A stretch of 64,000 nucleotides of DNA, from NCBI GenBank assembly GCA_033442325.1, contig JAWQFM010000019.1:200398-264397 (forward strand). The letters are read 5' to 3'. The DNA comes from Salpingoeca rosetta (taxonomy: Eukaryota > Protista > Choanoflagellata). Within the stretch, counting starts at the first letter, position 1. The number at the start of each line of letters is the position of its first letter. The translations under genes and the position numbers were made by a program. The notes beneath the pieces were generated by a model. That model was given only the letters and a program-made list of their open reading frames with translations, was not told the DNA's origin and ran no database searches. Positions 3,423 through 25,646 of the stretch are shown here, piece after piece.

Positions 3423-3629
3423 AACCCCTACCCCCCCCCCACCCCACACACACACATTCCCTCCCCATAACTGTATCCACCTCCATTGAAAACCACACAC
3501 CCTTTCACCACAACAAATAATACAATTTCAAAGTTGCATCATCTTCACGCACATTCTCCCCTCGATGTAAACCCCTGTATGAAAATTTGCCGCACACCAC
3601 CCCCGCGTGTGCACGTGCAGCTGGTTACG

Positions 3630-4718
3630 ATGCCACCACCACCACCACCACCTGTGTTGGAGACCTGGGCACCGCTCGCTTGGGAGAGTTCCGCAATTGT
3701 CCTTTGGGTTCAGCTGGAAGAAGGCCTGCGCAGGTCCAATGACAACAGTGCCATGCAGGTGGAAGAGCATGGTGATGTGGGAGTTGTGCACAGCCCCTTC
3801 CCTTGCTTACCTGCAATCATTGACTTTGTCTTCCACTCGAACGCTGTCGAGGGCGTCCCCGTGGACCTGGACACCACGCAGCGACTGATAAAAGAGCATG
3901 TACAAAGCACAAATCATGGTCCGCAAGTCGACGAGCACAACGTGCCCACTCTCGGCGCTGATGCCCTTGCTGGCGATGATGATGACGATGATGATGATGA
4001 TGACGACGACGACGTTCATGTTGTTGCCGACATTGGTGATGAAAAGGGCGGCACGGACACACATCTCGGTACACGAACAACACACGCACTTGACAAGACC
4101 ACAACTTCAGCACCCAAGATGACAACCAAGAACGACAGCGCTCGCCGCTTTGTTCTTCAGCATCTAACTTCGATGGTGTGGATCCAACAACAGCCACTGC
4201 ACGAGCTCTCGACAGAAACCATCCGCCACTTGCATCTCATCCTCATGGAGGGTCTGGAGGGTGCGGAGGACGGTGTTGACATGCAGCCAGGCGTGTACCG
4301 CACAACCCCATGCGGAGCGCACGGCGTGGGTGGCCGGCCAGTGCAGTATGCGGACCATACCACCATTCCCCGCCGCATGGAGCAGCTCGTCACCAGCACA
4401 TGCGAACAACTGCAAGCACTTCATCCTCGCGAGCTCACTCCGGACGTCTTCTACGTTGCTGGCAAGTTTCTTGTCGAGTTTCTAGCCATCCACCCTTTTG
4501 GCGATGGCAATGGGCGCTTGGCCCGGCTGCTTGTGCATTGGATCCTGTACAAGCACGGCTTCTTGCTGCCACTCTCCTTGGTCAAAGGCAAGCACAAGCG
4601 GGCGCGCCGACACTACTTGCAAGTTCTCGATCGCACGCAGCACCGTAACACAGACGTCTCCCTGGCTGCAACCTACATCCTCAGCCACGCCGTGCATGCA
4701 CTCGACGAGTACCGGTAG
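3630..4718 (+). CDS. Fic/DOC-family protein (putative AMPylase), single exon
   Basis: Complete Fic motif HPFGDGNGRLAR at about 4491, PGVYRT flap region, and an N-terminal autoinhibitory (S/T)xxxE(G/N) motif SNAVEG at about 3837. The start codon is uncertain (3630 chosen). Confidence 0.92.
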   Translation: MPPPPPPPVLETWAPLAWESSAIVLWVQLEEGLRRSNDNSAMQVEEHGDVGVVHSPFPCLPAIIDFVFHSNAVEGVPVDLDTTQRLIKEHVQSTNHGPQVDEHNVPTLGADALAGDDDDDDDDDDDDDVHVVADIGDEKGGTDTHLGTRTTHALDKTTTSAPKMTTKNDSARRFVLQHLTSMVWIQQQPLHELSTETIRHLHLILMEGLEGAEDGVDMQPGVYRTTPCGAHGVGGRPVQYADHTTIPRRMEQLVTSTCEQLQALHPRELTPDVFYVAGKFLVEFLAIHPFGDGNGRLARLLVHWILYKHGFLLPLSLVKGKHKRARRHYLQVLDRTQHRNTDVSLAATYILSHAVHALDEYR

Positions 4719-5319: not shown

Positions 5320-7917
5320 TCAGACGTTGAACTGCACGCGATTGCGTCCTCTGTGCACGCGCGACCGATGACGACGGTTTCTGCACACAAACACACACAC
5401 ACATATGTGCATGAGTACAAGGTGACATTGCGTGCGGCACACAAGCGCGAGAAGCACGAGAAAAAACCCAGATGGCGTGGACACAACCAGCACAAATACA
5501 GCAGCCGGCACACCTCGTAGCTTTGTCGATGAAGCTCTGCTGCTTCTCGACAATCCCGCGCCACGCAGGCGACGTCTCCAACAGTGCTGTCACAGCATTG
5601 CGCTGCTCCCGCGAGCACATGCCCAGGATTCGATCGAGCGCCTTTGAAGGGAAACAGGTGGCGTGATTGCATAGCAGGTGTGACGTTAGAAGGAGTCTGG
5701 ATGTTCAACTCAAAGATGCGCACATGGGTGCGCATGGCTGCGCATGCACGCACGCAGACAACAAACATAAGCACACACATAAGCACACACAAGCGCGCGT
5801 ACACACACACATAAGCACACACAAGCACATGTTCATTGACGGGTTTCTGCCACTCGACCAACCTGGTGCACGCAGAGCGGGAGGGGAAGACCAACAGCAT
5901 CAAGGACGTTCAGCTGCGCCACAACCTCAAACGCAGTCCTGGCATTGGGTCAAAAGCGGCAACAAACCATCAGGCTTCTTGAGATGATGAATGATACAAG
6001 GAAAGCAAATCGCAAGCCACACACACACACACACAGACACAGAAACAAAGTCACACACACACAGAGACACACACAGGCACACACACAGGCACACACACAC
6101 ACACGACACAGGCACACACACACAAGCACACACGACACAGGCACACACACACAGGCACACACGACACAGACAGCCACACAAACCTCTGCGGCCGCTGCTC
6201 TGCGAGTTGCGGGATGAGACGCAGCAGGATGGCCACGCGAATGCGCGCCCACTCGTGCGCGTGTGTGTCGTAGCGCCGCATCACCACTTCCCGCATTCCC
6301 GGATGCCGGAACCGCGGGCACAGCCCGTCCGTCAACACAAGGTGGCGGCACTCAAACGCAGCCAGGTTGTACCAAAACGCAGAGGGCATGTCCGCTGCGG
6401 CCGGCATCAGCCGCTGAAGGTCAAGCACAGTCAGATTGCCTTCGCTGGCAGCAACAAACTGGAGGTACAAGCGCACGGGGTGGTAGTCCTCAAGATGGTC
6501 GAAGATGGCGCTGTCATCGTCAGCGGTGAAATCCTCCAGTGTTCCACGCTGCCCGACACCAGCTGCATCCGTCCGGGTGGTGCTCGCATCCCCACCTCCG
6601 TTACCCGTGCCACCCCCCTCACCCTCACCGTCATCACCATCATCGCCACCACCCTCCCCATCCCCTTCCTCCTCGTCCTCCTCGTCCTCCTCGTCCTCCT
6701 CGTCCTCCTCGTCCTCCTCGTCCTCCTCGTCCTCCTCGCGTGTGCCGTCAAGGCGATCAAGGATACACGTCAGCACTTCATCACAGAACTGCTCACAGTC
6801 CATGGTTACGCCTCCACTGCCGCCACAAGCGTCACCAGCGTCACTGCCATCATCGTTACCACCACCATCATCAGCGGCACCACCGTCGCTTGCCTGCCGC
6901 AGCACGTTCAGGACGTGGCCGTCTGTGGAGAAGGCGAGGGCCTCGTTGGCCACCAGCACAGCAAGGTACGGTGCTTCCGTCTGGCGACACAGCGCCTGCA
7001 GCCGTCTCACATCATCCTCGCTCAGGGCTCCACGCTGCACCACCGCATTCTGCCGCGCCAATGCAGACACAAATGCCAACCAGCCAATTGATGTCGATGA
7101 CGCTGACGGCGACGTTGTTGATGAAGACGAGGCCGACGTGGCAGGCGTGGTGCTCGTGGTGGAGGCGGTGGTGGACGGTAGTGATGGTGCTGGCTGCGGG
7201 ACGGGTGCGATTGCTGATGGGCCCACAACGTCCCACACGCTGGTCTGTGAGCTTGCAGGCATCGCCGTAGCCTCACCATCCCCATTACCATCATCGTCAC
7301 CGGCTGCAGCCGTGTAGCAGTGCGCCACGCGCACCGGGTGCCAGTTGTACTCGCCAGCCCGTGCCCTGGCCTGCTTGGTCGCTGACGTGATTGCATGCGT
7401 GAGTTGCGCAGGGTCTTCTTGCTTCACAGGGGTTCGCGACGTCACAATAAACACCACATTGTCTGGCACCGCTGGCGGAATGACGTCATCCTGGCAACAG
7501 CGTTGGTGATCATGGTCATGGTTGGGTGATGGCGATCGGGTGTGTTTGAAGGTGAGTGGAAGCAGGCTGCCTGCTGTGTGTGTGTGTATGTGTGTGTGTG
7601 TGTGTGCGTGTGTGCGTGCGTGTGTGTGTGCATGTGTGTGCGTGTGTGTATTGTATGCGTGTTCGCCTTGTGTGCGTGTGTGTGCGTTGTGCGCCAGTCT
7701 TCACGTTGGTGGAGTCTTTCGTTACAACAGTGACTGCGTGCATGCACAGGCAAAGAGCAACCGTGGTCAGTGCTTACCAGCGTGGCATCTTCGCCGAGTG
7801 CATGAAAGTCGTCGATAATGACAAACACGGGGTCCTGTCATGTGTGGCGCGGAGATGATTGAGTGTCCAAAACGGAAACGAAAGGAAGGCACAGCGGGGC
7901 ACGCGACAGCACGCAGG

Positions 7918-7950
<33 letters not shown>

Positions 7951-10900
7951 CCACACCCACACCCCCACCCCCACGCACACCCACACACACACAACCTTGG
8001 CGTCGTGAGCTGCAGCGGTGAGGGCCTCTGTGAGCGCCGTTGTCCGTGCCACAGCGAGGTTTGAGGGGATGGTACGGGAACCAGCACGAAGCGGCTCAAG
8101 GGCCCGCGGTGACACATATCCACGACGCAGCGTCTCCAGAGACTCAACCTCGACTGGTGGGGACGGCACGGGGGTGTGAGGACAATTACACAAGGGATTG
8201 CAGGGTACAAGTCTTCACACGTGCGCACACGCACGCAAGAGGCACAACGTTCGCAAGACACGCACAACACACATCGTAACGAATACCCACACCCACACCC
8301 ACACCCACACCCACACCCACACCCACCCACACACCCACCCACACACCCACCCACACACACCCATACACACACATACACACACACACCCACAGTCCACGCA
8401 CCGAATTCCTCGTGATTCTCGTCCAGGAGCTCAAGAATGTCGTGTGGGCGGATGCGCATGGCATACTTGCCGGCGCGGCTGGCGTGGGTGATGGCAACAT
8501 CGACGGTGCTCAGACGAAGTGGCGAGCCGCGTGCAAGCGAGCCATCCACGTGGGCAGGCAGCGTCGAGCACGACCGCAGGCGCGCTGGCGACGTTGACTG
8601 CGGCGGTGGCGGCGAGATGAGCCGGGAGTGCAGCTCGTGTGGGTGAGGGGCACTCAACCCTTGCCCTGTGGACACACCACCCCGAGTGGCGCCTGACGTG
8701 TCATCACCGTCTTCATTGCCATCGCCATCACCACGGTCTTCATCACTCCACGTCACCCCGCGCTTCTGCCGGCGCGTTCGAGTTGCTTTCATCTCATCAC
8801 CGCTCGCCGCCTCCGCCTGTGCAGCGGGGGCGCACAGCACGCCTGTCGCCGGAAGCGGTGGCCGTGATGATGATGGTGATGAAAGTGATGAGAACGATGA
8901 CGACGATGCTGCCTCCTGTGTCCCTCCCATCGATGACAGTGATGGCGGTGGTCGCGGTGGGGATGATGATGATGATGATGGTGGGTGATCGACAACGACG
9001 GTTGGGAGCGGCGGGGGTGCGCTCGAATCATCACCGCGTCCACGCGTCCGGCCCCTGCGCCGCCTGCCATCCACAGACGATGACGACGATGTTGGCACTG
9101 TTGTTGCTGTTGCTGTTGCTGTTACTGTTGTTGTGGTGGTGGCTGTGGTTGTGGTTGTGGTGGTTGGTGCTGCAGCGTGCGGTGTGCTGCTTGCATGCGC
9201 GGGTGCATGGTCACCGCCCTGGCTTTCGTCGTCATCAGCATCAACCGCCATGGCCGTTGCAACGTCAAAGCTTGGCGCTGGTGGGCCTGCTGCTGTTGCT
9301 GTTGGTGGTGGTGAACGTGAGGTGGCGGCGGTGGGCGTGGAAGCAGAAGTCGTGGTCAGCTGCGGTGGAGGCGGAGGTCCCGCATTGCCGCCACGACCAC
9401 GCTGTCGCTGCCGCCGCACAGCGCCACCACTGCTGTGCTCATCATCGGTCTTTGCTTGCTTTCTCGGACGTCGCCCGTCCCTGTCGTCGTTCAAGCGTGC
9501 ACAGTGACCGTTGTCACCATCACCACCACCGCCACCGCCATCGTCGGCGTGGCTGCTCTTGAAGCGGCCACTCTGCCCCTCAGGTGTCAACACGTCACGA
9601 CGACCACCACCATCACCAGCACTCGTACGGTCGTCACCATCGTCACGCCCGCCAACAGCGTCGCTAGCGTCACCATCACTGGTGCCGGGTGCAACTTCGC
9701 CCCTGTCCATGGAGCTGAGCATGTCTGCCGCCTCCTCCAGCGCCACAAGTCGTTCACGGCGACACTTGTCAAGGTATGCTGTCGGGATCTCACAGCACAT
9801 GCTGCGCTTCCACAGCCGTTCTCCCTGCCACCCGCCCTTGAACGCCAGGCAGTCGTGAACGCAAATTGGCCGCGTTGCATTCGGGTTTCGCCGGACGCAG
9901 TGTTGTTGTTGTTGCTGCTGCTGCTGCTGCTGCCGCACATCGCTCGGAGCACCGGCACCGATACCAACGCCGGCTCCTGGCTGCTGCTGCTGCTGCTGCT
10001 GCTGTTGTTGCTGTTGCTGTTGTGACGCGTCACCGGTTGTAGGTGGAGTGGCGGGGGCAAGGGTCGCCGGCGCCTTCATCTCCGTCAGCTTGCCAACCAG
10101 TGAGACGGGGAGGCGGCCAGGCAGCAGTCGCACCTGCTCCCCAGGCTTCAGCTCAAAGCTCTCACACAGATACCGCCCAGCAGTAAACTTGACGTAACAT
10201 TCTGGGGCAATGATGGTGCCGACAGCCCACAGCCCGCACGGCGTACTTGACGCGCGGCGGCGGCGACCACGACCGCGGTACGAGCCAGCACGACTCCCTG
10301 GTCGACTCCCAGCCCGCGAGCCAGGGCGGCTGGCGTTGTGGCTGCCGGGGCGACTGCTGCTGCGGCTGCGGACACGGCGCAGCGTTGGCGGTGGACTTGC
10401 GCTCAAGCCGGGACTGCTGGCTCGCCGGCCCCGCCTCGACCTGTCATCGCTGTCATCGTCACCATCACCGCCATCACCGCCATCACCACTCGTGCCGTTG
10501 CCGCTGCGATCCGCAAGCAGCGCAAGACGAGGCGTGGCCAGCGGGTGTGGCCTGCCTTCATCGTGCTCGCCGTGGTTGGTGGTGGCAATGGTGGCGGCGC
10601 TGCCAGTGAGGAGGTGAGGCAGCGGCGGCGGTGCGTCTGGATTGGTGTTCTTGCGCCGACGCGTCCGCCCGCGCGTTCTGTGTGACAACGATGTTGGTGC
10701 CTGTTCTGCAGTTGCTGCTGCTGCTGCTGTTGTTGAGGCGGTTGGTGACATGGCGTTTGAAGGCACGCTCTTGCCGCTCTGCCACTGGCGGCGGTGGGTG
10801 TCACTGCCACCGATGTCGCCATCATCGCTGTGTTCACGCGCTGCGGGGATTCGTCCAGCGCTCCGGCCTGTGCTCGCCCGCGCGTGTCCTGGTGACAGGT

Positions 10901-11938
10901 CGCTAGCAGAGTGGCCGTGGCCAGGGGTACGAACATCGTGTGCGTGCGGTTGGTGTGGTTGCGACGGCGATAGCGCCTGTGACTGGGACTGCGTGTGCGA
11001 CATGTGGTGTGCGTGCGAGGTCGTGCTAGCGCTGGCGCTGTCAGCGCCCAGCTGCGACGACGACAGGCGATGCGTAGACGGGGAGCGACTGAGGTATTCT
11101 GTGGACATGCTGGGCACGTTGAACATGGGGGCAACGTGGTCGCCGTCAAACACGCTGCGGCTGCGCGGGCGAGCAGGGAGCAGCCGCACGCCGAGCTGGT
11201 TCGAGGTGCCGCCACTTGACCTGCCCTTGCGTTGCTCACCGCCTCGGGTCATCGCACCAGCAGCATCCGTGGCCGCATTCGCCGTCCCTCCTATTGTTGT
11301 TGCTGTTGTTGTTGTTTTTGACGTCGGACGTGGCGGAGAGTTGCCAGGCGACGACGCTGCAGTTGTCCCCGGTGTTGTCGCTGTTGATGACATTGCTGTT
11401 GTGCTCGGTACAACGCGCGTGCCCAGGTCGATGCCGGGGGCGGCGCGTGGTGACAGCGACAGCCGCATGTGCGCACCTCGGGCCGTGCTGCCGGAATTGC
11501 GTGCTGTGGCCATGGTGCGGAGGGAGGACCCAACGGCCGGCGGGGCATGCGCAACGCCCCCATACGTGTTGGAGCGCGGACGCCGCTTCCGACGTCGCCC
11601 GGAATTGGACACCGTACGGGACGGCCCGTTGTTTGCCGCATATCCATCATCAGCATCATCATCATCACCATCGCCACCATCACCACCACGGTTACTGTCT
11701 TCGGTGCTGCTGCCCATTGAAGAGAAGGGGCTGGCATGGTCTGCGTTGGTATGCGTTGCCGCCTGCGCCGATGGTGATGGTGATGGCGGTGGTGAGGACT
11801 GTGACAGCGACGATGGAAGCACGATGGCTGGTGGCTGCTGCGACATGGCTGCTTCCTCTGCTGTCATTGCCACCGCCTCCTTCAGCGGTGCCAGCGAGCC
11901 TTCACGCGAGGCTGCGTGGCGACCACTGCTCATCGATC

Positions 11939-11972
<34 letters not shown>

Positions 11973-13223
11973 CGGCTGCTGCTGCTGTTGTTGATGGAAT
12001 GGGGTGTGCAGAGGGCGCGGCTGCTGCTGTTGGCGCTCGAGTGCGTTGCCGAGCGTTTGAGTGGTTGCTGTTCGTGTGTCTGTGCCATCTGCGGTATTGC
12101 TCGCGGTCGACGCATCATCAAAGCTGCGGCGCTCGGGAAGTTTTCTGTGTGGCCGCCGCTGCTGCTGCTGCTGCTGCTGCTGTTGTTGTTGAGCATCGTC
12201 TCCGGGCGGCTGGCCCATGGTGGCTTCAAAGGAGGGCAGGTGTGGCCGTGCCGTCAAGCTCTTGGCTCGGGATTTCGGGCCCAACAATGACGCCTCCTTC
12301 GCTTCACCACCACGAACAACACCATTACCACCACCACCGCCGCCGCCGCCGCCGCCGCTGTTGTCGTCGTCCCCATTCTGCCACGTGCCTGCACGTGTGT
12401 CTGTGGAGAGCTGGTCCTCTGTGAAGTGTCTGAACACATGTACAGGGTGCATGCCAGGAAACACCCCAAACCGCTTGGAGCGGAGCGACTTGACGACATA
12501 GGCCGGCACGTTGTGTTTGAGCGCGCGCACGTTGACCAAATCGCCAGCACGGAGCTTGCAGGCAAGCGTTGTCTCTTCGGTCTCGCACTGGTAGTCGCAA
12601 ACCAGCTTGAACGTGTTCCCTTCCACCCGCTTCAGGTACCTGTTGGGTGGTTTGTGTGTGTGTGTGTGTGTTGTGTGTATGTGTGTGTGCGTGCCCTGTT
12701 GGGTGGTTTGTGTGTGTGTGTGTGTGTGTTGTGTGTGTTGTGTGAGGACATTCAGTGCGCATGCTTCGGTGGACAACGAACAAATGTTGAGCAAAACAAA
12801 GTTGGCGACGCGCTAACCCAACACACACACATACACATGCTGCTGATCTCACTGGAATGGGATGTAGATTGGGCGGCGGAAGCAAAAGTTGCGGTGGGCC
12901 GAGGATGAGCCGCGGGTGCGATACGTTGATGATGATGATGATGATGACGACGACGATGATGATGCATGTTTTGCTGTGGCTGACGTTGCATTGCCCCTCG
13001 CTTTTGCCTTTGACGATGATGTGACGACGGCGGGGAAGCGGATCTGTGCGTATGTCATGTAGAAGCGCGTGCACACCTCCAAGTGCTCGCCTTTGCTGAA
13101 CACATGCTGCGAATAAACATGCTGTAACACCACACAAACACACACACATGCACATGTATACAGGCGAAATTGGCAAACTCGTGAGCTGGTGTGTGTGTGT
13201 ATGATATCACACGTGCTTGACAC

Positions 13224-13263
<40 letters not shown>

Positions 13264-13271
13264 CACCAATC

Positions 13272-13327
<56 letters not shown>

Positions 13328-13935
13328 GACCACCACCAATCACCACCAATCACCACCAATCACCACTACTACTACTCCTACAATCACCACCGTCGCCAAC
13401 GTCATCATCACTAGCCGTTGCTGACGTACAAAGGCCTGGTGTCGGGCTGTGCCGACGGATGCGGCGAGGTCAGCGGTGCGGTCGCGCAGCCCAAGTTGCG
13501 TGCAGATGCTTGACACGACGTCGTGCGCACGCTTCGACGTGCTCGTCGCAGCGCACATGTGCCTGTCCGCCATTTGCAGCGCAGGTGTGTGTGCGTGTGA
13601 GTTGTGTTTGGTGTCGAAGGGCTACGATGAGAAAATAATGTTCCAACGATACTTGGTTGGCGTATACGAACGAACACAGACGCACATGCCACACACATAC
13701 ACACGCACACATACACACACAGGCACACAAGCAGACAGGGCTTACGTGACGAGGTTGGCGTTTGGGTAGCGCTGAAGAAGGTTGAGGGCAATCTGGGCCA
13801 CATGGAGGGATTTTCCGCCACCAAAAGGTCCATGAACATTCACCACGCGGGCGCCGCTGTCAATGGACTTCAAGAGTTCAGTCTCGCAAATGGTCGACTT
13901 TGGGCGAAGCGGACTTTCACCTCTGGCAGGACCCC

Positions 13936-13976
<41 letters not shown>

Positions 13977-13984
13977 CACCAATC

Positions 13985-14040
<56 letters not shown>

Positions 14041-15119
14041 GACCACCACCAATCACCACCAATCACCACCAATCACCACTACTACTACTCCTACAATCAC
14101 CACCGTCGCCAACGTCATCATCACTAGCCGTTGCTGACGTACAAAGGCCTGGTGTCGGGCTGTGCCGACGGATGCGGCGAGGTCAGCGGTGCGGTCGCGC
14201 AGCCCAAGTTGCGTGCAGATGCTTGACACGACGTCGTGCGCACGCTTCGACGTGCTCGTCGCAGCGCACATGTGCCTGTCCGCCATTTGCAGCGCAGGTG
14301 TGTGTGCGTGTGAGTTGTGTTTGGTGTCGAAGGGCTACGATGAGAAAATAATGTTCCAACGATACTTGGTTGGCGTATACGAACGAACACAGACGCACAT
14401 GCCACACACATACACACGCACACATACACACACAGGCACACAAGCAGACAGGGCTTACGTGACGAGGTTGGCGTTTGGGTAGCGCTGAAGAAGGTTGAGG
14501 GCAATCTGGGCCACATGGAGGGATTTTCCGCCACCAAAAGGTCCATGAACATTCACCACGCGGGCGCCGCTGTCAATGGACTTCAAGAGTTCAGTCTCGC
14601 AAATGGTCGACTTTGGGCGAAGCGGCTGTGACGACAGACCGGCCGTGATCATCCTGCATATGGCGTGTGTTAGGATTACATGAAGGAACACCACAAAGCA
14701 AGAAGGTCAACAAAAGCACCGCAGCAAGCAAAATACACACACACACACACTCCCTCCGTCTGTCTCGTGTACTCTCTCACTCACAACACACAACACAACA
14801 CAACACACAACACAACACAACACAACACAGCACAACACAACACAACACACAACACAACACATCCCTCCTTCGCACACACACACCTGTGAAAGCTGTATGG
14901 GTGCGTTGGCAGCGTGTATTTGGCCAGCATGGTTGCGGCCAAGGATTCGAGCACACGTGTAAGATGCAGCAGCAGCGCTTGTGACGGCGTTGCAAACGAG
15001 GCTGCTGTAGCAGTCGTCGCAAAGACGTCACTTCTGTCACTTGCATGTGGTGATGATGGTGATGGCGATGCGGGCGGCGTGACCTCCTCAAGCCAGCAGC
15101 ACGGCGACGACGACGACGA

Positions 15120-15152
<33 letters not shown>

Positions 15153-16452
15153 TGATGTGGATGTGGACGATGTGGATGACGATATGGACAAAGGTGCTGG
15201 TGTTGGTATTGGCTTCGCTGTTGCACAGGCGTCGCGAATCTGCTTGATCAGCTGCGAGTAGGCTGAAGAGGCACTGCTACCGTTGTTGCTGCTGGTGTTG
15301 TTGTTGTTACTGCTGGTGTTGCTACCGCTGTACCCGCGGCCACCGCTGCCGTCAGAGCTGCCAGGTGGCAGGGCAACAACCACCAGCGGCGTGCCAACCT
15401 GAAACAACAGCAACCCGTGTGTGCGATGTGCATGACGTGTGTCATGAGTGAGGTGCATGTGAGGGGAGGGGGACGAAAGGGGCAAATGTCTAACGCAACA
15501 TCCGCACATGGTGAACGCATGCAGCTGCCGAGAAGCATCGCGTTCATAATAACCACAGTAATACCACCACACACGTCGACAAACGCACACGCACACGCAC
15601 ACGCACACGCACACGCACGCACGCACGTCGATGGTGTACAGGAGGTATTCCTCGGCATATGTGCGGTGCCGTGGGTTGAGATTTGGCATGGCAGCGCGGA
15701 TATCAAGCAGCTCGCCTTGGATATCGGGAATGCTCGCTCTACCGTGTTGTAGTGAGAGCGCGTGTGTGAGAGGGTGCAAGCGTGTGCAAGCGTGTGCATG
15801 TGTGTGTGTGTGTGCGTGTGTGCTGTTTAAGGGTGAGCAGGTGGTGACATGATGACAAGCAGGCCCTTGCAGTGAACAAGTCCGCGTACAGCTGTGCTTC
15901 GATGTCCTTTTGAGACACAAATGCCACGATGAGATCATGCCTATGTTGCACAACAATGCACATCACACGACATGGTGGTGAGCACAAGAGGCCATCGACA
16001 TGGTGGCTGACGTGCACGCTGCGCGCTGCAGGCAAAACGAAGCACAGATAGACAGGGAAACACACACACACACACACTCACTCTCTCACTCACACACTCA
16101 CTCACACACACATTGACGGATAAATACAGGCAGATACAAACGCACCTACGTGCACACACACCCGTCACGCACGCACGCATATACACACACGCACAAAGAC
16201 AGGCACACACACACAATCAAGAACAGCACGCGCACATTCAGGTTACCGCTTGATGAGGTCAAATGTGAGGAAGAGCGGGAGATCATCAGCTGGGAGCTGC
16301 GCCTCCCAGTCGTCGAGATGCAGCAGTTCCAGGGCACCCATGTTGACCAGATCGGCCTCCAGGCGCCTGAGATGTGACTCGATTGCGGCTTGCACTGGCT
16401 TGTGGCGCTCGTCCACAGAGGGCCGGATACACACCCGAATTGCGGCCGCCAT
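5320..16452 (-). CDS. Large multi-exon STAND-class NTPase: degenerate DUF4062-like N-terminus plus NACHT-like domain interrupted by SH3-like modules and low-complexity sequence
   Basis: Exon 1 MAAAIRVCIRPS...DLIKR/HDLIVAFVSQK. Walker A VVNVHGPFGGGKS (about 14521-14560), then THMCAATSTS...DVVSSICTQLG. Walker B DPVFVIIDDFHAL (about 7797-7836), then IPPAVPDNVVFIVTSR (about 7435-7490). Large exon about 8402-12638. Last exon NRRHRSRVHRGRNRVQFNV* ends at 5320. Splice phases are compatible at the junctions checked. Confidence 0.75.
13224..14625. repeat. Tandem duplication with 713-bp period (13224-13912 and 13937-14625) and a 24-nt unique spacer
   Basis: Identical ORF translations offset by 713 (13411..13839 vs 14124..14552). 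Both copies start in a (CCACGA)n microsatellite. Confidence 0.95.

Positions 16453-20761: not shown

Positions 20762-25646
<4,885 letters not shown>

Follow-up and report, generated by a model that had tools for sequence, protein, structure and literature searches.

A divergent STAND-type P-loop NTPase gene of Salpingoeca rosetta, with Walker A and Walker B probably separated by a long, mostly disordered insert with SH3-like modules

We identified in a 64,000-nucleotide stretch of the Salpingoeca rosetta genome (contig JAWQFM010000019.1, positions 200,398 to 264,397; hereafter the window) a single-copy gene that probably encodes a divergent NWD1/NPHP3/TANC-type STAND P-loop NTPase, the core of which is interrupted by a mostly disordered loop of ~1,550 residues. 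The gene is on the minus strand and runs from 16452 to 5320 (all gene coordinates are positions in the 64-kb window). STAND NTPases, among them the NLRs, APAF-1, NWD1 and TANC, act as central switches in innate immunity, in cell death and in scaffolding, and their nucleotide-binding fold is normally compact, with the sensors at the ends. A preliminary description of the locus had proposed a NACHT-type domain split by an insertion carrying four SH3-like modules. All the strings it quoted were found on the minus strand where it had placed them, and the analyses described below support its central proposal, one minus-strand gene with a STAND-type P-loop domain split between Walker A and Walker B by ~1,550 residues.

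The exon model was read manually on the minus strand, with splice sites placed by string search. Its 14 exons (E1 to E14) join into 7,506 nt with one stop codon, at the end only, and encode 2,501 amino acids (aa); all 13 introns are GT-AG and preserve the frame. The Walker A motif GPFGGGKS (14521-14544, residues 332-339 of the model) is in E5 (14459-14653), and the HMCAAT and VVSSICTQL strings 3' of it are in E6 (14143-14275; HMCAAT...VVSSICTQLGL...ARHQAF), which encodes beta2/alpha2 of the NTPase and has its 3' end in phase 0. Walker B (PVFVIIDDF, 7805-7831, from residue 1960) is encoded by a 57-nt mini-exon, E10 (7778-7834; DPVFVIIDDFHALGEDATL), with phase 0 at both ends, and the sensor-1 strand VFIVTSR (within PDNVVFIVTSR, 7434-7466) by E11 (6184-7490). 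Walker A and Walker B are separated by 6.0-6.7 kb of DNA and, in the spliced model, by 1,628 residues, in place of the contiguous arrangement (≤~100 aa) that is typical of STAND NTPases and is seen in the paralogues of the same genome. The insert (residues 405-1959) is encoded by E7-E9, which sum to 4,665 nt or 1,555 codons and have phase-0 junctions on both sides. Between the two motif groups runs an open frame of 1,675 codons (7767-12794, minus strand), and the central exon E8 (8402-12639; 4,238 nt) has 1,412 open codons in DNA of ~63% G+C, which cannot be explained by chance. Given this 1,412-codon frame, the in-frame GT-AG introns and a homologue of E11 found at E = 5e-45, the observation as a whole is not fortuitous either.

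Both halves of the NTPase fall on one profile. Joined E5 and E6 (95 aa) gave sub-threshold Pfam matches to AAA_22 (profile positions 3-64), NPHP3_N (19-84, E = 0.0015), AAA_16 (14-90), NACHT (1-62), NB-ARC (11-81) and nSTAND_NTPase5, with GPFGGGKS aligned to the P-loop of NPHP3_N, NACHT, NB-ARC and AAA_16. The tail of E9 joined to E10 and the head of E11 matched AAA_22 (67-100) and AAA_16 (118-147). The ranges are complementary, so that the halves cover successive stretches of the same profiles, and, roughly summed, the two exceed the cut-off for the generic AAA_22 alone (20.5 + 13.8 vs. 27 bits). We also scored constructs from the gene model against a profile that we built from six paralogues of NPHP3_N type in this genome. 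The first half scored 6.3 bits (profile positions 41-94), the second half 13.4 bits (148-206) and the rejoined halves 18.1 bits over both ranges, so that the scores are additive; the direct joint of E6 to E10 scored 11.2 bits over both ranges, and constructs in which the second half was shuffled or reversed 4.5-6.2 bits. In these alignments the E9 tail (LAVARTTALTEALTAAAHDAK) corresponds to the helix that precedes Walker B in the paralogues, VFVIIDD falls on the Walker B strand of the profile and VFIVTSR on its sensor-1 strand ('viillDaldeL ... rivvtsr'). The insert therefore lies in a stretch that is variable among the paralogues (profile positions ~94-137). Further, E9 (7996-8153) joins in a single exon the second half of one of the SH3-like modules (VEVESLETLRRGYVSPRALEP) and the integral NTPase helix ahead of Walker B. 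Walker A (GxxGxGKS), Walker B (hhhhDD) and the sensor-1 TSR are all intact. Of the NACHT assignment in the preliminary description, a P-loop core of STAND type is thus supported but strict NACHT membership is not, each half being under the Pfam cut-off. The genome as scanned (55.4 Mb, 68 contigs) has at least 17 places above the NPHP3_N cut-off, at least 12 above the DUF4062 cut-off and at least 53 SH3_1 matches, none of them at this locus; a family of near-identical NPHP3_N genes is on contigs C15 and C4.

The insert is transcribed as exon. In two stranded RNA runs (X21 and X22) nearly all first mates align to the plus strand, which places the origin of the RNA on the minus strand. This minus-strand RNA extends from E6 to E10, with the exons covered at similar depth, and over E8 it is continuous and unspliced. 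Exonic depth in X22 was ~7x in E6, ~10x in E7 and at the 5' end of E8, 15-24x at the 3' end of E8 and in E9, and ~13x in E10, a profile that fits a single 3'-biased transcript and shows no excess of E10 over the exons of the insert. Bins that are mostly intronic were depleted in proportion to their exonic content (2.55 in bin 12701-12900 of X22 vs. ~10 on both flanks; 5.7 in bin 8101-8300 vs. 10-15 on both flanks). Splicing was read from bin depths and contig geometry, in a setting where microsatellite-rich introns are masked and joints at repeats are hidden. In X12, a 2011 run that behaves as RNA, the collinearity of one contig (record 9; 1,372 nt, depth 9.94) with the window starts exactly at the E8 donor (8402), with 402 letters beyond. 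The X12 bin depths of 4.92, 2.64, 5.07 and 2.98 equal 99, 53, 102 and 60 bases at depth 9.94, which are the end of E8, two parts of E9 (three bases repeat-masked) and E10 (57 nt plus 3 fortuitous). As 158 + 57 + 187 = 402, the end of the contig falls in E11. Intron coverage was absent from X12, whereas X1, a DNA-like run, covers the intron sequence 8154-8275. Contig geometry and bin depths together provide transcript evidence for the splicing of E8 to E9 and E10, and on to E11. After 10595, both X1 and X12 also have nine in-frame nucleotides (GGCGTGTGG) that the window lacks, which fits coding constraint on the insert. At two other positions, 10557 (T>C) and 11716 (A>G), every aligned read and contig differs from the window; the differences at all three sites, shared by every run with coverage there, are strain differences or assembly errors.

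An exhaustive HMMER search of 1.84 billion representatives with E11 recovered a sole true relative, P0001 (E = 5e-45, 38-40% identity); three other matches were acidic low-complexity matches and were rejected. The language-model look-alikes of P0001 in the Atlas are the WHD_NWD1 (0.91), NPHP3_N and WHD_TANC1 clusters. The source of P0001 is a pair of AT-rich genomic contigs of another organism, L003 (1-3125) and L006 (1-6679), from two sibling public runs, in the project of SRR14727189 and SRR14727191; P0006, on L006, is a cluster mate of P0001, and its contig starts at the same base as L003. L003 keeps the Walker B mini-exon, phase 0 at both ends (VILVIDDFHDLPKETRL), and the sensor-1 motif, and the counterparts of E11-E13 are conserved in position. 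The contigs stop upstream of the Walker B mini-exon, so that the comparison with this relative covers the mini-exon and the exons downstream of it. Compared with P0001, E11 has three lineage-specific low-complexity expansions, one Ser/Thr-rich, one of Gly/Asp and one long and acidic; loop expansion is therefore a general trait of the protein that extends beyond the big insert. A search of the S. rosetta genome, which included a 111-aa piece of E11, returned no paralogue of the gene, consistent with a single copy. Word-index protein searches with E8, its 3' third and the Walker A exon found no relative, the first two being swamped by low-complexity words.

The insert is rich in Ser, Ala, Gly, Arg, Thr and Pro, and a hydrophobicity scan placed its ordered islands exclusively at the four modules of the preliminary description and at one very short stretch. 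The strings by which these modules had been recognized lie between the Walker A and Walker B groups on the minus strand (13074-13106, 12453-12605, 9768-10157 and 8092-8459). Module 1 (HVFSKGEHLEV ... IYIPFQ) is an ordered island in E7 (12853-13121), with a poly-Ser loop. The low-complexity E8, Ser/Ala/Gly/Arg/Thr/Pro-rich, contains module 2 (12440-12620; NTFKLVCDYQ...LRAGDLVNV...KRFGVFPG), module 3 (9708-10238; FELKPGEQVRLL, a polyglutamine loop and WQGERL...EIPTAYLD) and the first half of module 4 (8402-8474; MRIRPHDILELLDE), which is spliced across the E8/E9 intron to its second half in E9. Structure prediction of the modules covered module 2 only. Folded alone with AlphaFold2 (AF2), it gave an all-beta model of low confidence (predicted local distance difference test, pLDDT, of 61.6), for which the best 50 PDB matches in Foldseek were all canonical SH3 domains, including those of Src, Fyn, vinexin, MAP3K10 and POSH (E ~0.02, template modelling score by target ~0.6, 17-30% identity). 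The all-against-representatives alignment (VIA) returned nearly all SH3 (Z ≤5.1, root-mean-square deviation 2.8 Å over 51-52 residues), and weak PDB sequence matches to the sorbin and vinexin SH3 domains and SH3-annotated Atlas clusters agree. Module 4 matched the SH3_2 profile at E = 0.014, with 15.5 bits vs. the Pfam cut-off of 21.8. Pfam searches found no SH3 match for E8 as a whole or for modules 1-3, and deleting the long loops of modules 1 and 3 did not change this.

We further scored each module against a local profile derived from 20 bona fide SH3 domains encoded in the genome, with 300 shuffles per module. Module 4 (9.5 bits) and module 2 (5.0 bits) were reached by none of their shuffles, whereas module 1 (-0.1 bits) was reached by 28 of 300 (p ~0.09) and module 3 (-0.8 bits) by 47 of 300 (p ~0.16). 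The idea of four SH3-like modules, and the module-by-module profile search proposed to check it, hence held for module 2, through its fold, and for module 4, through weak hidden Markov model scores, but not for modules 1 and 3, ordered islands that gave no SH3 signal. Pairwise comparison of the four modules detected no significant mutual similarity (best z = 2.4), so that they are not recent duplicates. Three proline-rich motifs in the insert, two APPPLP (10617-10634 and 9003-9020) and one RPPLP (8850-8864), all on the minus strand, are candidate SH3 or WW ligands.

The ends of the protein carry few recognizable features. E1 (16247-16452), which contains the start codon, E2 (15890-15940) and E3 (15627-15738) encode an N-terminal region that looks alpha/beta, and E4 (14884-15398) a low-complexity linker and, after it, a helical segment leading into the NTPase. 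The suggestion of a DUF4062 N-terminus was abandoned: the spliced first 100 aa had no match to PF13271 at E ≤ 10, the locus was not among the 43 genome-wide DUF4062 matches, and E1 had neither a Pfam match nor a usable match in the Atlas. Downstream of sensor-1, E11 encodes putative helical and winged-helix regions with the PLAL-like (PYLAVLVANEALAF) and F-R-H-x3-R-E (FRHPGMREVV) motifs; this region had no Pfam match, and a PDB sequence search with an E11 profile gave chance matches only. The tail past the putative winged-helix region, to which E12 (5863-5938), E13 (5514-5641) and E14 (5320-5380, with the stop codon) contribute, is ~88 aa long and has no Pfam match and no repeats. The absence of a C-terminal repeat sensor, as first described, was thus borne out.

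The order of motifs along the protein (Walker A GxxGxGKS, Walker B hhhhDD, sensor-1 TSR, a PLAL-like motif in a putative helical region and F-R-H-x3-R-E in a putative winged helix) is that of NWD1, NPHP3 and TANC, which also provide its best sub-threshold Pfam matches and its Atlas look-alikes. It differs from these proteins in that the domain is non-contiguous, WD40, TPR and ANK repeats are absent, DUF4062 is not detectable and the scores are below cut-off. NLRs combine NACHT or NB-ARC with a C-terminal LRR or other repeat sensor, and no such sensor is found here. In ABC ATPases of the SMC/Rad50 type, the Walker A and Walker B halves are likewise distant in sequence and come together when the chain folds back. 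Those proteins belong to a different class of P-loop and are not homologous, and their insert is an ordered antiparallel coiled coil, whereas the one described here is a disordered loop bearing SH3-like modules. Multi-SH3 adaptors (sorbin/vinexin, POSH, Nck) likewise carry small SH3-type modules on disordered proline-rich linkers, and the model of module 2 superposes on their SH3 domains at 17-30% identity. In our protein, however, two modules are supported, the conserved ligand-binding Trp is apparently replaced, the scores are below the Pfam cut-offs and an NTPase surrounds the modules. The integrated domains of some plant NLRs (NLR-ID; e.g., PMC10934728) also equip a STAND switch with extra, non-canonical interaction domains, possible sensors or decoys, yet these are at the termini or between domains and not inside the nucleotide-binding fold as here. 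In a survey of NACHT proteins, those of S. rosetta and Monosiga brevicollis were found only with ANK, TPR or WD40 repeats (PMC3879445). Our literature search found no paper on an SH3-bearing insert inside a STAND domain.

On the interpretation that we favor, the insertion point would lie after helix alpha2 and before the helix leading up to the Walker B strand, in a stretch that varies naturally. The two halves would fold back into one core, from the alpha2-alpha3 region of which the disordered loop would project, carrying four small predicted ordered islands (modules 2 and 4 SH3-like) and the three PPLP motifs. Because the protein has no C-terminal repeats, the SH3/PPLP loop is its likeliest partner-binding site, and it could serve as a regulatory, partner-binding or self-association site that gates nucleotide exchange and oligomerization. 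A more specific version, in which the multivalent SH3/PPLP loop is itself the sensor, and the binding of proline motifs or the formation of condensates directly controls closure of the split core and oligomerization, is conceivable, though we regard it as rather unlikely. If correct, it would be a previously undescribed wiring of a STAND protein in a close unicellular relative of animals, from a lineage used for reconstructing the pre-animal signaling toolkit. The connection of the SH3-like modules to tyrosine-kinase signaling and a role as decoys, both raised in the preliminary description, are pure speculation. More generally, if the split core is real, the fold tolerates large intradomain insertions, here a transcribed, frame-preserving insert of ~1,550 residues with candidate peptide-binding modules, and the gene would offer a natural test case for how interaction modules borne on a loop gate a P-loop switch. 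If the insert is only one of the many low-complexity expansions of the genome, the gene is a curiosity.

Several results weigh against a split core. Each half is below every curated Pfam cut-off (for the first half, 19.1 vs. 24.8 bits for NPHP3_N, 14.7 vs. 26.7 for NACHT and 13.3 vs. 23.5 for NB-ARC), genome-wide scans with the NPHP3_N and DUF4062 profiles did not return the locus, and even the paralogue profile recognizes the first half weakly (6.3 bits). The AF2 model of the C-terminal half, built for the relative P0001 from a two-row alignment, has a pLDDT of 35 and was discarded. Among the joints displayed, from which those at repeats are masked, no read or contig crosses E6-E7 or E7-E8; we infer the upstream link E6-E7-E8 from strand, depth and frame only. 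Moreover, the sequence of both L003 and L006 breaks off at one poly-T tract, 85 nt before the Walker B mini-exon. The role of the insert, finally, is one that we infer entirely.

Some of these observations could be accommodated if the insert had made the P-loop domain non-functional and left the protein as a disordered SH3/proline-rich scaffold only. The sub-threshold scores of both halves, the lack of a paralogue and the low-complexity expansion that is rampant throughout the protein would all fit such a relic. We nevertheless consider it unlikely, given that Walker A, Walker B and the sensor-1 TSR are intact and that the exons of the latter two are conserved in a relative of only 38-40% overall identity. 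The phases of the exons allow for another explanation. As E6 ends and E10 starts in phase 0, skipping E7-E9 would keep the frame and bring Walker A within ~66 aa of Walker B, so that E7-E9 could be an optional cassette or a nested unit and the working NTPase the product of a direct E6-E10 splice. Junction reads are displayed neither for nor against this splice. However, the helix in the E9 tail has its counterpart ahead of Walker B in the paralogues, skipping lowers the score from 18.1 to 11.2 bits, the depth of E10 in X22 (~13x) is not above that of E8/E9, and the X12 contig joins E8 to E9 and E10, all of which make the cassette quite improbable.

Least credible, in our view, is that the locus is mis-assembled around microsatellites or that the model fuses two or more separate genes only on paper. 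The concern arises from a perfect direct repeat of 689 bp at an offset of 713 (13224-13912 and 13937-14625), each copy of which ends in a (GGTCGT)n array. The repeat doubles most of E5, intron 5, all of E6 and a microsatellite, and it accounts for the second copies of Walker A (13808-13831, minus strand) and of HMCAAT and VVSSICTQL (each present twice, 713 bases apart). Further, four words sampled at the junction of the duplicate (13885-13965) are listed in no sequencing run, although short unitigs next to microsatellites are easily lost. The duplicate may be a recent, microsatellite-mediated duplication or an assembly artefact. It leaves the predicted protein unchanged in either case: the downstream copy (13224-13912) sits within the E6-E7 intron of the model, its E5 has no in-frame acceptor, and the protein is identical whichever copy of E6 is spliced in. 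Independent DNA and RNA contigs from several studies are, moreover, collinear with the window between repeats, and frame and splice signals agree over the 14 exons. A STAND-type core interrupted within a single gene remains the interpretation that we prefer.

Two further features of the window lie outside the NTPase gene. A run of 165 N (21500-21664), an assembly gap or a withheld stretch, is located away from it. On the plus strand, a 410-codon open reading frame (3486-4718) encodes a Fic/DOC domain (Pfam Fic, E = 5.7e-13) with the motif HPFGDGNGR and is oriented convergently to the NTPase gene, facing its 3' end.

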